Shown here: one piece after another, positions 37,449 to 46,025 of the stretch
Layout of the letters: each line of letters starts with the position of its first letter
Numbering within the stretch: the stretch's first letter is position 1
DNA from: Zancudomyces culisetae HAW-14-8
Taxonomy: Eukaryota; Fungi; Kickxellomycota
Assembly (NCBI GenBank): GCA_052426225.1
Contig: JBNJNM010000015.1
Location: 1,364,001-1,428,000, forward strand
Direction: 5' to 3'
Length of the DNA stretch: 64,000 nucleotides
Notes under the pieces: model-generated
What the model was told of the DNA's origin: nothing
The model's database searches: none
Seen by the model: only the letters and a program-made list of their open reading frames with translations
Position numbers and translations under genes: made by a program

Positions 37449-39027
37449 TTATAAAGACAAAGACACCGAATCTATAACCCGAGGAGTAATGCTGATAACC
37501 ATATTTCCTCGATGAATTATTTCCTCAGGTCCGACATAACCCAACACCTGCTCAAGCTCTTTGCTATGCAAGCCTCTGATCCTGTTGATTTCGTGACTAG
37601 AATAATTGACGAGACCGCGGCCAATTTCATATTCAGAGCCATCAGTGTGTTTATAAACGAGTTTAACTGCTTGTGCAGACTCAAAATCGTCTGATATAGA
37701 ACTTATTCCAGCGGCGAAAAGTGATTTTTTGTTTTTGGCAACGGCAATAAAAGCACCAAAATCGACATAGAGAGTTCCAGTACATCGCATACCATGCATA
37801 ATCCACCATTTTTTGTCACGCATTCGGCTGATACAAGGAATAAACCTGGTACACATCACATCCTTGGGCGGAGCGTTTTTGTCATGGAGGTGAGCTGGGT
37901 CAGAAAAGTAATCAATAATATCGAGAATCCGGCGTGGCTTTGTGCTATTGGTAATGATGGTACATACACCAGCGGCCATTGCTAGTTCAGCAGCGATCAG
38001 TTTGGTTGCCATTCCACCTGTCCCAACAGCAGATCCAGCCGAACTGGCATCAACCGACCCAACAAGCTTACCCATATCGTCAACTACATACACTGGCTTT
38101 GCGTTTGGATCATTACGTGGATTGTTGGTGTACAGAAAATCTACGTCTGTAAGCAAAAATAGAAAATCGGCCCGTATCATTCCCGCCGTAATTGCACTTA
38201 ATGTATCGTTGTCTCCAAATCTAATCTCTCCCAAACTAACAGTGTCGTTTTCATTGACTATTGGAATCACCCCCATTTCTAAAAGCGACATGAATGTATT
38301 GTATGCGTTCACGTACTGCGAATGGTTTGACAGATTACTCCTAGTCAGCAGAACCTGTGCTATTGGCTGGTCAATTTGACTGAACATGGTATCATACAAC
38401 GCCATTAGTCTACCCTGGCCTACCGCTGCTACTGCCTATTATTTATTTGGTTTTATCCTGTTTCAAGCTTATAAGTTATGTATTACAAGTAATAAAAAAA
38501 TATTAAAAAAAAAGAGATAATAGTACCTGAATATGGTCGAGTCTTTTTGGTTTTACAGGAATATTCAATCTTCGTAGCCCAATACCTACTGCTCCACTAG
38601 ATACCAGTACTACCTGATGTCCCTGCTCTTTCAACTTTATGATGGTTTCTACCACAGCATACAAAATAGAAAATAGTGGAACGTGTGTAACTGGATCACA
38701 AATAGAGCTTGTGCCCAACTTTATAACGATGGTTTTTCCTTTGTTTGCAGTCGGACTACTGGATTTGTTTTTGGTGCTACCTCTTGAAAAGTTAGCGTTA
38801 TATTGTTGTGCGTGAGTAGTACCACCACTGCCCGTCGATGGTACATGCATGGAAGATTTCGACCGTTTGCCTTCCAGCATACTTACTCCTTTTTGGGGTT
38901 GTTTGCTCTCGCTACTAAAGTTCTCGGAATTATCTGCTCCTAAGTTTTTGTTTCGGGATTCGACACTTAACTGGTCAAGAGAATGTGTAGTCGCATCATA
39001 GTTGCTCATGTCCTTTTCTTTACTCAT
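37449..39027 (-). CDS. PRO1: Glutamate 5-kinase with PUA domain; exons 39027-38527, 38435-37449
   Basis: IVIKLGTSS, VSSGAVG, QAVAAVGQGRLM across the intron, PIVNENDT, FGDNDTLSA, GTGGMATKL, RGLVNYSS. Confidence 0.94.
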
Positions 39028-40085
39028 TTTCAAATATTTGGGCCTATTTATCAAAAGTGAGGCGTAAACCTGTATGTTTATCAAACCTAAATTACTCTTT
39101 GAAAAGGTTCTGTATGTGTGTGTATGTGGTTTATTTTTACAAATCTAGTAGAATTGATGTACCTAATTATAAAGGTAAAATACAAAGACAAAAGATTGAA
39201 AGAATGCAGCCAGAGCTGGAAAATTACAGCAAAGGCTAAGGTTTAGATTCTATATTTGAACCAAAAAAAAAACAAAGAAAAGGCTGGGGGAGGTGAGCGG
39301 AGATTGGAGGAAGGTGGAAGATGAGGGGGAGGGGGAGGGAATCACAATTTAGCACTATCTTTTTTTTTTCTGGTTTTGGTATTTATTGAAAATGACAACC
39401 GATAATCATACCTCCTGCCAAAATACCATCTCAAATTTATTTAACCCGTGCTGAAGGGCTCCCCAATAGATAAAGATCACGCAAATTGTTAAAAGCAAAC
39501 CAGCATAGATGAAAAAAAAAAGGCGAGGTTGAAAGCTGAATCCGACAGATTTTAATATCCATCTGATTGCACTCTGCTTTGAAGTAGTCGAATCGAATCG
39601 AATCAACAAACAGGCTTACACAAGTTAAATGTGTCACAAAGCATACAAAAGCAAATGTCGATATTTTTGGAAATACGCCAAAAATCTCAATCCAAAACTC
39701 ACCTTCCCAATCAACTCATGTTTTTTTATATTGGTGTGCTGGCTCCCTTTCTAGTGTATGTCAAATGTGTTTGGTATATTGACAAGTTTACGAGAAAAAA
39801 GGTAACAATTTACATGCAAAACCAAAACAAGTGGTTCATAGCAAAAGCTGATTGATTAATGAATGCATTAGGATGTTGATAATAATATGGTGTAGTAGCA
39901 ATGTCAAAAAGCGTATAATATAGTGTTCAAATATAGCATAAATGGTGTGAATAAATACAATCAATGCGTGACAACTTTTCATAAAAGAAAACTAGTTAAA
40001 TAGCCCTCACCAAGTCTCTCCCTCCCCCCCTCTCTCCCTCCTCTCATGAAAAAAAAACATAAAAGAAAGGGGTGAAAAATAATAC

Positions 40086-43000
40086 TCAGATACCAGTGGA
40101 TTCGCCCTTATTCTTCTTCATAAAAAATGGTAGAATGGCATTGTTGAGTTTATTAACTACGCCGCCTTTCTTGGATCTCAAACTGACTTCTGATCCTCGT
40201 GTTTGGGAAAAAGCCCTGCTGCTGAGTGCATTGGATTGATCTATATCGGCTTCATCTATAATACCTCTTTCGCTCCCAAGAGAAAAATCAGGCGAATACA
40301 AGGGGCTGCTCATGGTCTGTGTAAAACTAGAAACTGGGTTGTTAAGATTATTTTCGGAAGTTGTATACGCACTTGCAGATGCAGTAAAGTCATTTGATTT
40401 GTTGTGAACCAGCGATAGCAAACTTGCACGAAGTCCGGCGCTGCGTTTGTTGGAAGGATTATGTGTCTGTGTTGAGGCCACTGACCGCAATGGGTTGGTA
40501 CTCCTACTCGCCAAAAGGGATGTTTCATGACCTTCGCCAAAAGAGCGAACACCAGAGATGCTGGTTAGCGCAGAGGGCTCCTTTTTAACCGTGGTCTCAA
40601 CAGATGTGTGGCTAAACTTACCAGAAATGGCTCTCTTTGGAAGCAGATATTTAAGTGCTAGGACCCAGTTGTAGTGCTCTGCATGGCTTCTCGCTTTGAT
40701 TCTAATGTATTTTTTGTCGCTGTATACATAGATACTAAGATTGGTAAAGTCATATGGGTCATTTATTGAGGGGTTGTCTGCGAGAACTCGGAAGTGTTTA
40801 ATGTTTAGCTGCTTGGCAGGAGATTGTTGTGAATCCAGCTTGAAAAGCGCATTGATAAAATTAGACGTTTCAGGCGCGGTGGAATTTGGTGGTTGTTTGG
40901 ACCAGTTGAGCATTTTGGTGTATGGATGGATCCAAAAATAATAAACGTATTTGTCCGAAATAGAATCCAAACTGCCCTGTATAATTTTAGACTTGCTGAG
41001 TTTCAGCAAGTACGAGCCTATCATTGTGTATGAAATTGCCTCAATCACGTGCTTACTAATTTTAGTAAACAACAATGCATCAAGAGGATCACCAGGTCGA
41101 CTAAACACAAGAGTTCTGGCCAATGCCTCAGAGTGGGCGTTCTGCTCGTGCTCTGATTCAGGTGTGTTTTGAGGACTTTTGTTTTCAGAAACTGTGGATT
41201 TTGCGTGGTTCTTGGTGGCAGATTTGTGTGATTTCTTGCTCTTGATTGACTTGGGAATGTGAACCACTCGCGACTCAGCAGGTACTGGATAAGGCTTTTT
41301 GTGGTGTGTATATTCTTTTAGAGGTGCTGTCACGTATTTGGTGGTAGCAAGCGAATGAAGAATTGTGGCTCCATGCTCATCCTCAAAGGTCATGTCATCA
41401 AAATGCTTACTAGTTGTGATAGCTGAATCTTCAGAATTGCTTCTTGACGCTGAATCATGAAGTGATAAATCAGCTGTCCCTATTGCACCTACCCTCCGAA
41501 GAGACTTATGAACATCTTTTTGCGAGGGACGTTTATGGTATGGTGCTGGAAGTAGCCCACTGCTTCGCGATGTCTTTCTAAGAACTTGCAGCTCATCCAT
41601 ATCGCTGTAGTAACAGGTTTCGGCCTCAGCCTCAGCCTCGATCTCAGCTTCAATTTCGACCCTTCGTCGTGCAGACACTGTGTTGTACTTAAGGCTTTCC
41701 CGTCTTCCCCTAAACTCACCAAACAGCCCTGAAATTAATGTGCTCGTAAGTTTGCTCTTTTCCAGCTCGTGTCGCTCAGAGAGTAGCGCATCCATACTAC
41801 CAACGAGTGCCCTCGCATTGCTTTGCTCGGTTTGTCTGATATTATCATTCGACATATCTACACCTTTAGTAGCAATAACTCCACCAAACGCCGCCTCGGC
41901 TCCGCTAGTATCTTCGGTTTGAACACACGCATTCGAAAAATCTAAGGGTATAGTCTGTGTATGAACCTCGCCAACCATGACGTCGTATGTTTGTGTACAA
42001 ACCTCGGTAATTTCTACCTTCTTAGAACTCTCTGTCTGAACGCTCGCTTGAACCATTTCCAGAATATTCTCTGTTTGGGTGCATATGTCAAGGGCTTCAG
42101 TCTTTGTGTTCATACTCTCTGTTTGTATCCCATTGTCCTCGACCTCTGTAACAGATTCGGTTTGAGTAAAGATCTCTGCCGTACATCCAATTTCACTAAG
42201 AGTTTCTGTTTGTATAGATGATTCTGATATCTCTGTAAAAGATTCCGTTTGTATGGACATGTTCTTTGGTTCCAAAGGTTGGTCTGTTTGAGTAAAAGTA
42301 TCTTCAGTATATCCGATCTCGCTAAGAGTTTCGGTTTGTATAGATGATTCGGATATTTCTGTAAAAGATTCCGTTTGCATAGACATGTTGTTTGATTCCA
42401 AAGGTTGGTCTGTTTGAGTAAAGATATCTTCAGTATATCCGATCTCGCTAAGAGTTTCGGTTTGAATAGACATACTCTTTGGTTCTATAGGCTGATCGGT
42501 TTGAGTAAAGACTTCTGTAATGTATCCAATCTCGCTAAGAGTTTCGGTTTGTATAGATATACTCTTTGGTTCCAAAGGTTGGTCTGTTTGAATAGATGAT
42601 TCGGATATTTCTGTAATAAACTCTGTTTGAGTAAAGATATCTTCAGTATATCCGATCTCGCTAAGAGTTTCAGTTTGCATGGACATGTTCTTTGGTTCCA
42701 AAGGTTGATCGGTTTGAGTAAAGATATCTTCAGTATATCCGATCTCGTTAAGAGTTTCGGTTTGTATAGATGATTCGGACATTTCTGTAACAGACTCTGT
42801 TTGAATAAAGACTTCAGTTGTGTATCCAATCTCGCTAAGAGTTTCAGTTTGCATCATCTCATTCACAAATTCAACAAAATCAGTTTGCGTATGCGCTTCG
42901 TTCAAACAGCTAATATCCCTCAAACTTTCTGTCTGCACTGCAAGCTCATCAAGCTGTATCAAAATTTCTGTTTGAATGGACATTTCTTTGCTCTCTGGCT

Positions 43001-46000
43001 GTAACTCTGTTTGGGTACACACCTCAGTTGTGTTTCTTCCGGTTTCCATTTCATCAACCTGTACATGAACTTCCTTATCTGTATCTGTATAGAAATCTGT
43101 CGTGGTTGTTTGAGTACATGAATCGCTTGTTGCTTTATCCAAATGCTCACCCAATGAACGCATGTTAAGATTTCGTTTTGCCACACCCGATTCCAGCTCG
43201 GGTTCTTGATCTTTAAGACACTCATCCTGGTGCTCGAGGCTCAAGTCTATCTGGGTATCTGAATCGTTGCGATCATCAGTAGCCTGGACACCAACGCTAT
43301 TCGATTTTTTGAACTCGCCATTTTCATTTTTGCTAGGTAATGCTGCGTTTTGAAGTTCTGAAGCTAAGCTACTGAATCCATCCGTGTATTGGTAATCATC
43401 ACGTAGCGAGTTTGCCTCCTTTCTATTGAATGTCGCATCGTCAGAAGAACCCATCAGTGGTGTTCTGAACTTATAGTTGTTAGAATCCTGTCCTCTTCTA
43501 AGCCGTTGCATTTTTTGTTTGTACGACTTTATATACCTGTCATCGCTATCTTCAGAGCTTCCTGTTTCGCTTTCGGATGCACTAGAGTGCCTATCGTTGT
43601 TAGATGGGCGCCGTCTACTGGATTTAAACGGTGACGATCCGTATGAAGGCTTTTTCTTGGCCTGAGAAAGTATCCGGCCATTACGATACGCTTTTACCAA
43701 TTCATCATCCTGTAATGATGGTGATCTCAGATTGGGTATATTTTCGTATCCAGCCATACTGTTTGCTTCGTCTTCAATCATACCTCCACCTTGTCTGATT
43801 GCTTGACCAACCGCGTCCAGACCAACCCCGACTTCTAGCTCAGGATGCATTACTTTGATCTCCTCCAGTCGATTCTGTGCTACCTTTAGCAGTCGCTGCA
43901 GATTTGAGGAATAATTTTTTTCTTGCTGATATACCTCTGTCATTTTTTGCAACTTTTCTTGTGTTTCTTTTTGCAGATTATCAGCCTCCATGTGTTGTTG
44001 TGTTTTTTCTAATACAGAAATGTCTGTAACTGAAACATTCGCAAACCCACGAGTTGACTGTCCAGTCTCCCTACCCTTTCGGTGTCCCTGTTTTGTCTGA
44101 TCTTGCTCCAACTTCAACTTAAGAGTTTGAATTTCCTGTGCCATTTCTCGCACTTTATCGCTATGCTGAATACTAGATGTATTTATCTCACTACGAAGAT
44201 TTTCAATATCTCTTTCATAAGCGGTTTGATTATTTTTGTACTTTTTGGTAAGCTCAGCTTCGGTTGCTTTTAGCGCATCTACCTTCTCATTAGCTTGGAC
44301 CAACATATTTGACTTTTTGGCAACCTCGACTTCCGTCCGCTTCAATGTTGCCTCCAACAGCTTGACTTTTGCCTGTAATGCATCATTTTCACTCTGCAAA
44401 TTGTACATTTGTTCGTCCATTAATTCCAGCTGTTCGGCTGCTCTTTTGTATCTTTTTGACTCTACATCCTTTTCAAGTAGAAGCGTTTGAAGCTCATCAG
44501 CCTTGTCATTGGTTTCTATGCCTCTATCAATTAGTGCCAAATCAAACTTCTCCACTTTTTCTATCAAATCTCTCCCCATCTCTGTAGCCTTAATAAGCAT
44601 TGACATCATCTCAAAGTGTTTCCAATCTGTTTTTTCGTGAACATCCAATCCCACATCCCCATTTTCGTCCTCGAATCGCAGCAAGGTTGTTGTGTGTGGC
44701 GACGTCATTCTTCTATTTATCTTGTCTCTTCTACTAGAAAGACTGTCAAGTTCTCTGCCTTTAAAACCATTATTACTCTTTGGTGTTACATTAACACTAA
44801 ATAAATCCAATCCCAAAACATCCTCGTCCGTGTTTTTGGAGTAGGCCGAATTATTATTCCCCTTCATTTTTGTCGGTGTTGCCATGCTATTTTTCATGCT
44901 ATCTCCTTCATGTCTCGGGCTTTTAAGATTTAATATCACCTTAAAGTAGTCTTTACGAAACGCTTCAAATTCGCTGACCACCCTTTTTTCGCGGCGCAAG
45001 TCTATCCGTGGCTTTTTCTCCACCTTTGCCTCGCTTACCTCAACCTTTTTGTTTCTTTCCTGCTCTAGAATTGACATTAAATTGTGATTTTGTATGCTTT
45101 TCTCATCGTAAGCTGCCTGCATTTCCTGCAGCCTAGTCAATAACTCTATATTCAACGATTTCCTGCGTGAAAGCGAACCCTGTGTTCCTCCAGGTGTCCC
45201 TTCTGTCGTTTTTGACGTTTTTGTTGGCGTTTTAAAATTGTATGGTACTTCTTCTCCGATCCGCTCTCGCTTTTGAGCTGTATTGTCACCCATTCCTGAG
45301 TTAGTAGCTTTTTCTATCTGTTTTTCATTTTCCGTCTCTATTTCTGTCTCTATATCCGTCTGAAGCATACTATCAATCTCTTCCTCTGTTATATGATCTC
45401 CAAACTCTTCGCTGGACTCTTCATGGCCTCTATCCCCTATACTCAACTCCCTTTTAATTTCCACCGTGCTCTTCTTTTCATCCTCACCGCTATCGTACCC
45501 AGTCGGTACATCATGCTCGCCTCTTCTGATTTCCGTGGATACACTCTCCAAACTTGAACCATTTGACCTCTGGTTTTCGTTTTTACCAAGTACATCCTTT
45601 TGACTCTTATTTGTCTCTACCTTGGTGACTTTTCTCTTTCCCTCTACGCCAGTGACATTTAAACCCTCCCTTACTAGATCTCCTTTTGTTGAAAATAGGC
45701 TGGTTTTGCTGGACTCCGAATCTCTAGTGCCACTTCCTCCATATTGCTTTTTCTGCGACTGCCTCAGATAAGGAAATTTAGATTTATTCGTCTTAGCAAT
45801 CAGCTTTTCTCTACACGCCTCACACCGCATAATATGCATTATACGTCTATCTGTATTTTGCGTTAAAAGTAACATCGATTTAACATCCTCCGCGTTATCC
45901 TTGTCCTTTGATTTTGACACGCTCGCATTCGAGCTCGAGGAAACAGACTTTTTTAGTTTTTGTTTCGGTCTTCCTCCGCTCACTTCAGCACTCCTATCCT

Positions 46001-46025
46001 TCTCCCTTCTTGGTTTCTTGACCAT
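40086..46025 (-). CDS. NUM1: Num1/ApsA/Mcp5-like cortical dynein-anchoring protein (coiled coil + QT-repeat region + C-terminal PH domain)
   Basis: Mcp5/Num1-type PH signature VIEAISYTMIGSYLLK…YYFWIHPYTKMLNWSKQPP…IRIKARSHAEHYNWVLALKYLL; long coiled coil at about aa 470-730. Confidence 0.75.
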   Translation of the reverse strand: MVKKPRREKDRSAEVSGGRPKQKLKKSVSSSSNASVSKSKDKDNAEDVKSMLLLTQNTDRRIMHIMRCEACREKLIAKTNKSKFPYLRQSQKKQYGGSGTRDSESSKTSLFSTKGDLVREGLNVTGVEGKRKVTKVETNKSQKDVLGKNENQRSNGSSLESVSTEIRRGEHDVPTGYDSGEDEKKSTVEIKRELSIGDRGHEESSEEFGDHITEEEIDSMLQTDIETEIETENEKQIEKATNSGMGDNTAQKRERIGEEVPYNFKTPTKTSKTTEGTPGGTQGSLSRRKSLNIELLTRLQEMQAAYDEKSIQNHNLMSILEQERNKKVEVSEAKVEKKPRIDLRREKRVVSEFEAFRKDYFKVILNLKSPRHEGDSMKNSMATPTKMKGNNNSAYSKNTDEDVLGLDLFSVNVTPKSNNGFKGRELDSLSSRRDKINRRMTSPHTTTLLRFEDENGDVGLDVHEKTDWKHFEMMSMLIKATEMGRDLIEKVEKFDLALIDRGIETNDKADELQTLLLEKDVESKRYKRAAEQLELMDEQMYNLQSENDALQAKVKLLEATLKRTEVEVAKKSNMLVQANEKVDALKATEAELTKKYKNNQTAYERDIENLRSEINTSSIQHSDKVREMAQEIQTLKLKLEQDQTKQGHRKGRETGQSTRGFANVSVTDISVLEKTQQHMEADNLQKETQEKLQKMTEVYQQEKNYSSNLQRLLKVAQNRLEEIKVMHPELEVGVGLDAVGQAIRQGGGMIEDEANSMAGYENIPNLRSPSLQDDELVKAYRNGRILSQAKKKPSYGSSPFKSSRRRPSNNDRHSSASESETGSSEDSDDRYIKSYKQKMQRLRRGQDSNNYKFRTPLMGSSDDATFNRKEANSLRDDYQYTDGFSSLASELQNAALPSKNENGEFKKSNSVGVQATDDRNDSDTQIDLSLEHQDECLKDQEPELESGVAKRNLNMRSLGEHLDKATSDSCTQTTTTDFYTDTDKEVHVQVDEMETGRNTTEVCTQTELQPESKEMSIQTEILIQLDELAVQTESLRDISCLNEAHTQTDFVEFVNEMMQTETLSEIGYTTEVFIQTESVTEMSESSIQTETLNEIGYTEDIFTQTDQPLEPKNMSMQTETLSEIGYTEDIFTQTEFITEISESSIQTDQPLEPKSISIQTETLSEIGYITEVFTQTDQPIEPKSMSIQTETLSEIGYTEDIFTQTDQPLESNNMSMQTESFTEISESSIQTETLSEIGYTEDTFTQTDQPLEPKNMSIQTESFTEISESSIQTETLSEIGCTAEIFTQTESVTEVEDNGIQTESMNTKTEALDICTQTENILEMVQASVQTESSKKVEITEVCTQTYDVMVGEVHTQTIPLDFSNACVQTEDTSGAEAAFGGVIATKGVDMSNDNIRQTEQSNARALVGSMDALLSERHELEKSKLTSTLISGLFGEFRGRRESLKYNTVSARRRVEIEAEIEAEAEAETCYYSDMDELQVLRKTSRSSGLLPAPYHKRPSQKDVHKSLRRVGAIGTADLSLHDSASRSNSEDSAITTSKHFDDMTFEDEHGATILHSLATTKYVTAPLKEYTHHKKPYPVPAESRVVHIPKSIKSKKSHKSATKNHAKSTVSENKSPQNTPESEHEQNAHSEALARTLVFSRPGDPLDALLFTKISKHVIEAISYTMIGSYLLKLSKSKIIQGSLDSISDKYVYYFWIHPYTKMLNWSKQPPNSTAPETSNFINALFKLDSQQSPAKQLNIKHFRVLADNPSINDPYDFTNLSIYVYSDKKYIRIKARSHAEHYNWVLALKYLLPKRAISGKFSHTSVETTVKKEPSALTSISGVRSFGEGHETSLLASRSTNPLRSVASTQTHNPSNKRSAGLRASLLSLVHNKSNDFTASASAYTTSENNLNNPVSSFTQTMSSPLYSPDFSLGSERGIIDEADIDQSNALSSRAFSQTRGSEVSLRSKKGGVVNKLNNAILPFFMKKNKGESTGI
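42120..42845 (-). repeat. Intragenic coding minisatellite: 17 units of 48 or 39 nt, each ending in QT codons
   Basis: 7 x 48 nt + 10 x 39 nt = 726 nt; recurring DNA words ctcgctaagagtttcggtttg and ttggttccaaaggttg on the + strand. Confidence 0.92.

Follow-up and report, generated by a model that had tools for sequence, protein, structure and literature searches.

The window analysed here is a stretch of 64,000 nucleotides (nt) from Zancudomyces culisetae HAW-14-8 (contig JBNJNM010000015.1, positions 1,364,001 to 1,428,000), a Harpellales gut symbiont of mosquito larvae (Kickxellomycotina). On its minus strand it contains an intronless open reading frame (ORF) of 1979 amino acids (aa; 40086..46025), whose translation, Pfam domain and NCBI protein match place the product in the Num1/ApsA/Mcp5 family. 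The central part of this protein carries a run of 28 short xQT motifs, a candidate docking array for the dynein light chain LC8 (Dyn2/DYNLL), which is the subject of this work. The ORF product is 99% identical to the NCBI entry 'Anucleate primary sterigmata protein A [Zancudomyces culisetae]' (P0001, 1917 aa), and the start of that model corresponds to M63 of the ORF. The frame opens 62 codons upstream of the NCBI start (45840-46025, minus strand), and this lysine-rich extension may or may not be translated.

Pfam recognised a single domain in the protein, Mcp5_PH (PF12814; aa 1660-1795, 40641..41048, minus strand), with an E-value of 2e-17 and 64 bits against a cut-off of 25. The same pleckstrin homology (PH) domain, presumably the membrane-lipid anchor, scored 68.4 bits in the genome scan. 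Further upstream, AlphaFold2 (AF2) run on the single sequence of aa 470-740 drew a near-unbroken helix (aa 471-653) followed by a second helix (aa 668-726), with predicted local distance difference test (pLDDT) values of up to 96. No Pfam model matches this coiled-coil region (aa 471-726, 43848..44615, minus strand), which by analogy with the coiled coil of Num1 is presumed to be the dimerisation and dynein-binding module (PMC6297085). The order of coiled coil, long linker and C-terminal PH domain is the layout of Num1, ApsA and Mcp5 (PMC6297085; PMC2063782). The long coiled coil, the Mcp5_PH domain and the NCBI name ApsA identify the protein as a member of this family, in agreement with a preliminary description of the window that had called it Num1-like. 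We infer its cortical localisation and its role in dynein anchoring from family membership only (PMC2063782, PMC6297085).

A quick tree of PH domains placed the protein in a Kickxellomycotina clade (Shimodaira-Hasegawa-like approximate likelihood ratio test, 100) that belongs to the fungal Mcp5_PH family; its branch is very long and adjoins that of a second, shorter Z. culisetae paralogue, and the tree carries a warning about long branches. The paralogous Mcp5_PH gene (L013, G000:C21:1889500-1899499, minus strand) has an 862-aa open frame with a coiled coil and with the PH domain at its very C-terminus, and the two genes are best called co-orthologues of Num1/ApsA on this comparison. Furculomyces and Smittium angustum carry a similar paralogue of 1200 aa (P0120, P0154).

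A script count found 37 QT dipeptides in the ORF, 28 of which form one run between the coiled coil and the PH domain, with their Q residues at aa 972-1369 (Q codons from 43112 down to 41921) and their 8-residue motifs at aa 967-1371 (41913..43127, minus strand). This is exactly the number of [T/I/M/V]QT motifs counted in the preliminary description, and all the examples quoted there (DSCTQT, EVCTQT, EMSIQT, DIFTQT, ESSIQT and NACVQT) are present. The residue preceding Q (position -1) is T in 12 motifs, I in 10, V in three and M in three, and position +2 is acidic in 25 of the 28 (E in 19, D in 6), as also described before. Consecutive Q residues are mostly 13 aa (thirteen times) or 16 aa (nine times) apart, again as first reported, and the remaining distances are 12 aa (three times), 15 aa (once) and 33 aa (once); the linkers between 8-residue motifs measure 4-8 aa. 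Three variant sites add to the run. SVGVQAT near aa 915 and KEVHVQVD at Q989, the latter lying within the array, correspond to the VGVQA and VHVQV variants noted originally, and NDSDTQID at Q925 (43245..43268, minus strand), an outlying candidate LC8 site with a TQI anchor and a score of 5.9 bits in the matrix described below, had escaped that list.

The motif is strongly over-represented: [TIVM]Q[TV] occurs 32 times in the whole protein, where shuffled versions of its sequence would give 3.0 occurrences (z = 17.6). Entropy over the 28 units was 0 at Q and at T(+1), and next lowest at +2, at -1 (T, I, V or M only) and at -4 (E, D, N, S or Q only). These low-entropy positions, -4, -1, 0, +1 and +2, are the contact positions that define the 8-residue LC8 motif. 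One linker position, +6, is conserved about as well as -1 (E in 19 of 28), and the other positions are variable. The linkers often read [S/T]-x-x-E from +3 to +6, with S or T at +3 in 15 of 28 units; throughout the array (41913-43127, minus strand) this is a CK2-like context, in which phosphorylation could regulate loading.

Tandem Repeats Finder detected periods of 87, 126 and 213 nt, at 71-89% identity, in the core of the array (42160-42851, minus strand). Module alignment resolved this recently duplicated core into three one-motif modules arranged in a non-periodic order: module A of 16 aa (ETLSEIGYTEDIFTQT), module B of 13 aa (DQPLEPKNMSMQT) and module C of 13 aa (ESFTEISESSIQT). We conclude from these alignments that the array arose by tandem duplication of the three modules. 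The repeat was found at no other place in the 27-Mb Zancudomyces genome. In GCA_001969505.1, an independent assembly from another strain, the array is equally long and shows no indel, and the two assemblies differ at 45 codons; therefore, the array is not an assembly artefact.

Several lines of evidence bear on how the anchors have been retained. About 12 units at the edges of the array show no flank similarity and still keep the anchor, among them SDSCTQTT, TEVCTQTE, KEMSIQTE, DELAVQTE, NEAHTQTD, EDNGIQTE, LDICTQTE, VQASVQTE, GEVHTQTI and SNACVQTE. Thr at +1 is encoded by all four Thr codons (ACA 14, ACC 8, ACT 4 and ACG 2), and Q by both CAA and CAG. Within the young modules, the anchor columns hold 6 silent versus 2 replacement states, both replacements being exchanges among T, I and M at -1, as compared with 14 silent versus 22 replacement states in the non-anchor columns (Fisher p = 0.07). 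Between the two strains, 17 codons of the array differ, none of them among the 84 anchor codons (p = 0.03); 11 of these changes are replacements and 6 are silent, indicating that the array evolves fast. Each of these statistics is modest and all point in one direction, which suggests that selection, and not mere recent copying, maintains the anchors.

We then compared the array with those of other fungi. A phmmer search with aa 960-1979 against 1.84 billion representatives left the repeat region unmatched, all matches falling in the PH domain. The nearest homologues nevertheless bear motif clusters of their own at the same place, from coiled coil to PH domain, in repeat sequences that cannot be aligned. 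S. angustum has about 24-25 motifs and Furculomyces boomerangus about 16-17, spaced 13-14 aa apart and built of units such as TSVSLQTE, ASISLQTE and TFASIQTE. S. culicis has about 12, including SNSCTQTD, TSIFTQTE, TEVGIQVE, IDIGIQAE, KDVESQTD and SDVGTQVE, together with IEIGTQTE, SEVGIQVD, NEIATQIE, NEIATQVD and ADKYTQTT. Numbers are lower in S. mucronatum (4-5 motifs), Dimargaris (about 5-10, of the types IQVD, VQVD and TQVS), Mycoemilia (2-4) and Coemansia (0-3). Z. culisetae and S. culicis have the first site, S[D/N]SCTQT, in common. In S. culicis and Dimargaris the anchor varies among TQT, IQT, IQV, TQV and TQI, which is the known degeneracy of the LC8 anchor, whose variants include KDTGIQVD in nNOS and LSIGIQVD in GKAP (Table S4 of PMC6607443). 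The survey of orthologues proposed in the preliminary description thus finds the motif kept in Harpellales relatives while its flanks turn over.

Motif number changes readily. Proteins P0049 (F. boomerangus) and P0152 (S. angustum) share a 90%-identity cluster in spite of a length difference of 110 aa, equal to 8 xQTE units; on this sequence evidence, repeat copy number shifts on very short evolutionary time scales, and the copy-number differences among Harpellales suggest that array length is evolutionarily labile. In 115 mostly Dikarya ApsA-type proteins, by comparison, the median number of sites was 0 and the mean density 0.038 per 100 aa, against 1.16 in the Zancudomyces protein, and the Mcp5_PH paralogue of the same genome contains just two xQT motifs. 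With array clusters present in relatives and absent from both Dikarya ApsA proteins and the paralogue, these comparisons identify the array as a lineage-specific innovation of Harpellales, perhaps of the wider Kickxellomycotina, and not as a family trait. We rejected an ancestral origin of the LC8 motifs for fungal Num1/ApsA proteins as a whole: 117 mostly Pezizomycotina homologues contained 10 strict motifs versus 19 expected, and the homologues from Neolecta, Tulasnella and Basidiobolus, with 2-4 motifs each, were also counted against it.

Motifs were scored with a log-odds position-specific scoring matrix built from hand-tallied position counts of the 79 binders and 32 non-binders of LC8Pred (PMC6607443, Table S4), with binder and non-binder reference distributions sampled from the matrices and not from real peptides. 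The array had a median of 5.8 bits, compared with 8.6 for model binders (interquartile range 5.7-11.2), 1.2 for model non-binders and -0.3 for random QT 8-mers. Twenty-one of the 28 motifs scored at least 5 bits, above the 75th percentile of non-binders (4.9), and 12 scored at least 8.5 bits; about a third lie where binders and non-binders overlap. Canonical sites of the array include SDSCTQTT, LDICTQTE and KSISIQTE, whereas SESSIQTE and sites of the types xxxFTQTx and xxxMMQTE are probably weak, and it is likely that not all 28 are good LC8 sites.

The array region is predicted to be intrinsically disordered, consistent with its first characterisation as acidic and disorder-like. It has a net charge of -74 over 410 aa and a hydropathy of 0.438, below the boundary of 0.478 and thus on the disordered side of the Uversky plot. 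AF2 run on its single sequence gave a mean pLDDT of 34.6 and a predicted template modelling score (pTM) of 0.33, with no residue above 70, whereas the coiled coil reached a pLDDT of 77.9 under identical conditions.

The genome contains one LC8 gene (PF01221, 91 bits; G000:C10), whose frame is intact over two exons and whose product keeps the groove residues in segments EKDIA, TWH, NFGSYVTH and FIYFY. The NCBI model of this gene (P0005, 88 aa) runs through an intron of about 150 nt (L001:1298-1713, G000:C10 ~989.3-989.7 kb, minus strand); its last 20 residues are translated intron and form a false C-terminus, the true exon 2 encoding THFFIYFYYEKTAVLLFKTG. Complex prediction used a full-length proxy, LC8 of Smittium megazygosporum (P0007; 70% identity over exon 1), four copies of which were combined with two copies of aa 1094-1125 (EIGYTEDIFTQTDQPLEPKNMSMQTETLSEIG). 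The three runs gave ipSAE interface scores of 0.53, 0.53 and 0.55 (median 0.53), against a top value of 0.02 among three controls. The partner had a pLDDT of 63 or more, agreement between runs was 94% of contacts or better, and no interface contacts were returned. The predictor's mark is reached by 51 of 78 solved complexes and by 2 of 108 mismatches.

Taken together, these results make it probable, with appreciable room for doubt, that the central ~400 residues of the protein are an intrinsically disordered, polybivalent docking array for LC8. This reading survived every computational test that was run. By means of the array, LC8 would probably join two chains, zipper-like, into a rod some 100 nm long. 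In the mechanism that we propose, the upstream coiled coil would pair two chains in parallel and in register, and LC8 dimers would bridge equivalent xQT strands of both chains, one dimer per 12-16 residues. Up to ~28-30 dimers could be loaded, and the 4-8-residue linkers would give a beads-on-a-string duplex, so that loading would stiffen and extend the stretch linking the coiled coil, as the dynein-binding part, to the membrane-binding PH domain. Scaled from the animal protein KANK1 (~3.5 nm per site; see below), 28 dimers would form a rod of ~100 nm, an assembly that would need 56 LC8 chains, or ~0.6 MDa of LC8, per anchor dimer. Because the sites range from canonical to probably weak, full loading would depend on cooperativity. 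Both grooves of an LC8 dimer are taken up by one client pair, and recruitment of dynein through LC8 is consequently unlikely.

KANK1 is the closest analogue of the Zancudomyces array. LC8 turns its L2 linker into a hinged rod of ~53 nm with 15 dimers, and its sites, undetectable singly and separated by short linkers, are nevertheless bound cooperatively and completely (bioRxiv 10.1101/2025.07.16.665182). The range of 5-11 sites quoted in the preliminary description for known multivalent partners is therefore out of date. Like the Zancudomyces protein, as far as the latter's role can be inferred from its family, KANK1 is a cortically anchored microtubule adaptor with a coiled coil and a long disordered linker holding many close, mixed or weak LC8 sites. 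It differs in being an animal protein without sequence kinship, and its sites are mostly non-TQT, separated by 3-4-aa linkers and experimentally verified. The candidate array of Zancudomyces has xQT at all 28 anchors, is organised in tandem repeats and has nearly double the predicted valency.

Among fungal proteins, the Dyn2-interaction domain (DID) of Nup159 in the yeast nuclear pore offers a second parallel, with five QT motifs next to a coiled-coil segment, linkers of 4-5 aa and a stacked Dyn2 rod. Unlike the present array it has 5 sites instead of 28, which are strong and easily predicted, and it belongs to a nucleoporin and not to a cortical anchor. Z. culisetae itself has a Nup159-like gene (L012, G000:C13:490500-499500), whose 2253-aa open frame contains three E[KR][AG]VQT[VI] motifs at aa 1805-1855, 33 and 17 aa apart and immediately preceded by a coiled coil of high charge and a polyQ run. 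This stretch is likely a Dyn2-interaction domain with fewer sites than that of yeast Nup159, three of ERGVQT type versus five.

The transcription factor ASCIZ/ATMIN, with 7-11 LC8 sites, resembles the Zancudomyces protein in its acidic array of [D/S/N]xx[E/Q]TQT[D/E]-type motifs within a disordered domain, and several units of the former protein's Zancudomyces counterpart are similar to it, for example LDICTQTE as compared with LDIETQTD of ASCIZ. ASCIZ, however, senses the level of LC8, and its mixed linkers of 3 aa and 30-41 aa lead to heterogeneous, sub-saturated complexes, whereas the Zancudomyces protein lacks a DNA-binding domain and has evenly short linkers. Rigid or homogeneous LC8 stacks have been associated with 'Goldilocks' linkers of 6-9 aa, as in QT4-6 of dASCIZ (6 and 9 aa), and the 4-8 aa of the array lie inside the range spanned by such stacks in Nup159 (4-5 aa), KANK1 (3-4 aa) and dASCIZ. 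The preliminary description had offered a rigid ladder and an LC8 sponge or sensor as two possible outcomes; because the linkers are evenly short, the rod is favoured, and an ASCIZ-like sponge or sensor role is less likely.

Within the family, Num1 of Saccharomyces cerevisiae homodimerises via its coiled coil, which also binds dynein, and no purpose has been identified for its central tandem-repeat (TR) domain (PMC6297085). This domain, of thirteen 64-residue repeats, is likewise a tandem-repeat spacer located between coiled coil and PH domain. Compared by description, it differs from the array in its 64-aa unit, as against 13 or 16 aa, and in that no LC8 motifs have been reported in it, which agrees with the earlier remark that the Num1 repeats are of another kind. 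Full-text literature searches found no paper tying Num1, ApsA or Mcp5 to LC8 binding or to TQT motifs, and the sole paper containing both 'Num1' and 'LC8' mentions Num1 once. The architecture thus appears to be undescribed for Num1, as had been surmised.

A number of observations weigh against LC8 as the partner. The score that sets binders against non-binders is intermediate for the array (median 0.7). Isolated SIQT peptides (from TMV, DAZL and FMN2) and DDIFTQCR failed to bind LC8 (PMC6607443), and neither F at -2 nor M at -1 occurs among the 79 binders, leaving MQT without a validated precedent. The same is true of L at -1, which predominates in the units of Furculomyces and S. angustum. 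E at -4, present in 13 of the 28 motifs, is commoner among non-binders; it also occurs in the motifs of the Nup159-like protein (TEKAVQTV, QERGVQTI and QERGVQTV), a presumed genuine client in the same species. The authors of LC8Pred count high charge and bulky -2 residues as unfavourable (PMC6607443), and the array region is highly acidic. The original assignment of the motifs to the LC8 type stands for their general shape and for the 21 that exceed the bulk of non-binders, and is weaker for stricter patterns: only 8 of the 28 match [DS]xx[TVI]Q[TV][DE], and none matches the KxTQT class as [^P].[KR].TQT, an expression that describes a single motif class and that clients of the family need not fit. 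The count is inflated by tandem duplication, and 28 motifs are not 28 independent observations, while the statistics for selection remain modest (p = 0.03-0.07). The complex prediction, a check suggested at the outset, separates the array peptide from its controls (0.53 versus 0.02), but it does so with a proxy LC8 and within the predictor's 'weak support' band, scores of up to 0.60 being found for just 5 of 78 solved complexes and for all 4 passing mismatches; it may also reflect memory of solved LC8-peptide complexes.

Some of these points would fit a neutral, or nearly neutral, expansion of a coding tandem repeat in a disordered acidic spacer, in which QT is kept only because the copies are young and the region works, if at all, as a flexible entropic linker without LC8. 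The 71-89% DNA identity of the core units, the gap of 8 units between two orthologues of one 90%-identity cluster, the fast change between strains (11 replacement versus 6 silent) and the several motif classes that score like non-binders would all agree with such a process. Yet about 12 diverged edge units with unrelated flanks still read [TIVM]QT[ED], Thr at +1 uses all four codons, and changes between strains and between units avoid the anchors. Moreover, orthologue repeats that cannot be aligned keep the anchor, its spacing and an LC8-typical degeneracy (TQT, IQT, IQV and TQV), and no such arrays occur in Dikarya homologues or in the paralogue. We thus find neutral expansion an unlikely, if serious, explanation.

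The xQT[E/D] units could also be read by a partner other than LC8, such as another beta-strand-capturing hub, TQ kinases of the ATM/ATR type or CK2-like acidophilic kinases, in which case their resemblance to LC8 motifs would be coincidental. This would accommodate the failure of many validated TQT-bearing peptides to bind LC8, as well as the TQ present in 12 of the 28 motifs and the [S/T]-x-x-E linkers (S or T at +3 in 15 of 28, E at +6 in 19 of 28). We regard it as improbable, in that Q is preceded by I, V or M in 16 of the 28 motifs, which hence are not S/T-Q sites, the invariant residues are Q and the following T instead of a phospho-acceptor context, the orthologue swaps (IQV, TQV, TQI and IQA) fit LC8 degeneracy precisely, and the predicted complex is specific to LC8 as compared with the controls; phosphorylation could still act as a further layer of regulation. 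It is more improbable still, to the point that we give it very little weight, that the repeats fold alone into a beta-rich repeat domain, for instance a solenoid, acting as a rigid spacer without a partner. The region is rich in T, I and S and the AF2 model draws long beta-strands through the repeats, but every one of these strands has a pLDDT below 50, within a model of mean pLDDT 34.6 and pTM 0.33, while the coiled coil was modelled with confidence under identical conditions. By its net charge of -74 and low hydropathy the region also falls on the disordered side in the Uversky analysis, and the order of modules is non-periodic. Autonomous folding was rejected, AF2 having given no confident model.

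Elsewhere in the window (37449-39084, minus strand), two adjacent ORFs of 318 and 193 aa resemble two exons of a glutamate 5-kinase gene (PRO1-like) with a short intron between them.

Multivalent LC8 clients are already known; what would be new here is the family, the origin by tandem repeats and a predicted valency higher than any other. If LC8 does bind, this would be the highest-valency client so far, with 28-30 sites as compared with 15 in KANK1 and 11 in ASCIZ, and the first link of LC8 to the cortical dynein anchors Num1, ApsA and Mcp5. The organism is obscure and all results are predictions. The copy-number series among Harpellales would provide a natural set in which cooperativity, register and the control of length could be studied in polybivalent assemblies.

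Since the 1990s the central repeats of Num1 have lacked an assigned purpose (PMC6297085), and the Zancudomyces array suggests that they may serve as a stiff spacer fixing how far the motor lies from the cortex. By mirroring the animal KANK1-LC8 rod in an unrelated protein, the array also points to a convergent use of LC8 across the gap between membrane and microtubule. A bolder possibility, which we put forward tentatively and consider rather doubtful, is that Harpellales replaced the Num1/ApsA spacer with an LC8-zipped rod whose length is set by copy number and whose reach is thereby tunable. If this were true, the family would hold a series of rods of ~20-100 nm, from about 5 sites in S. mucronatum through 12 in S. 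culicis and 16-25 in Furculomyces and S. angustum to 28-30 in Z. culisetae. The dynein light chain itself would then build the dynein anchor, and the reach of a cortical anchor would have been tuned by evolution.

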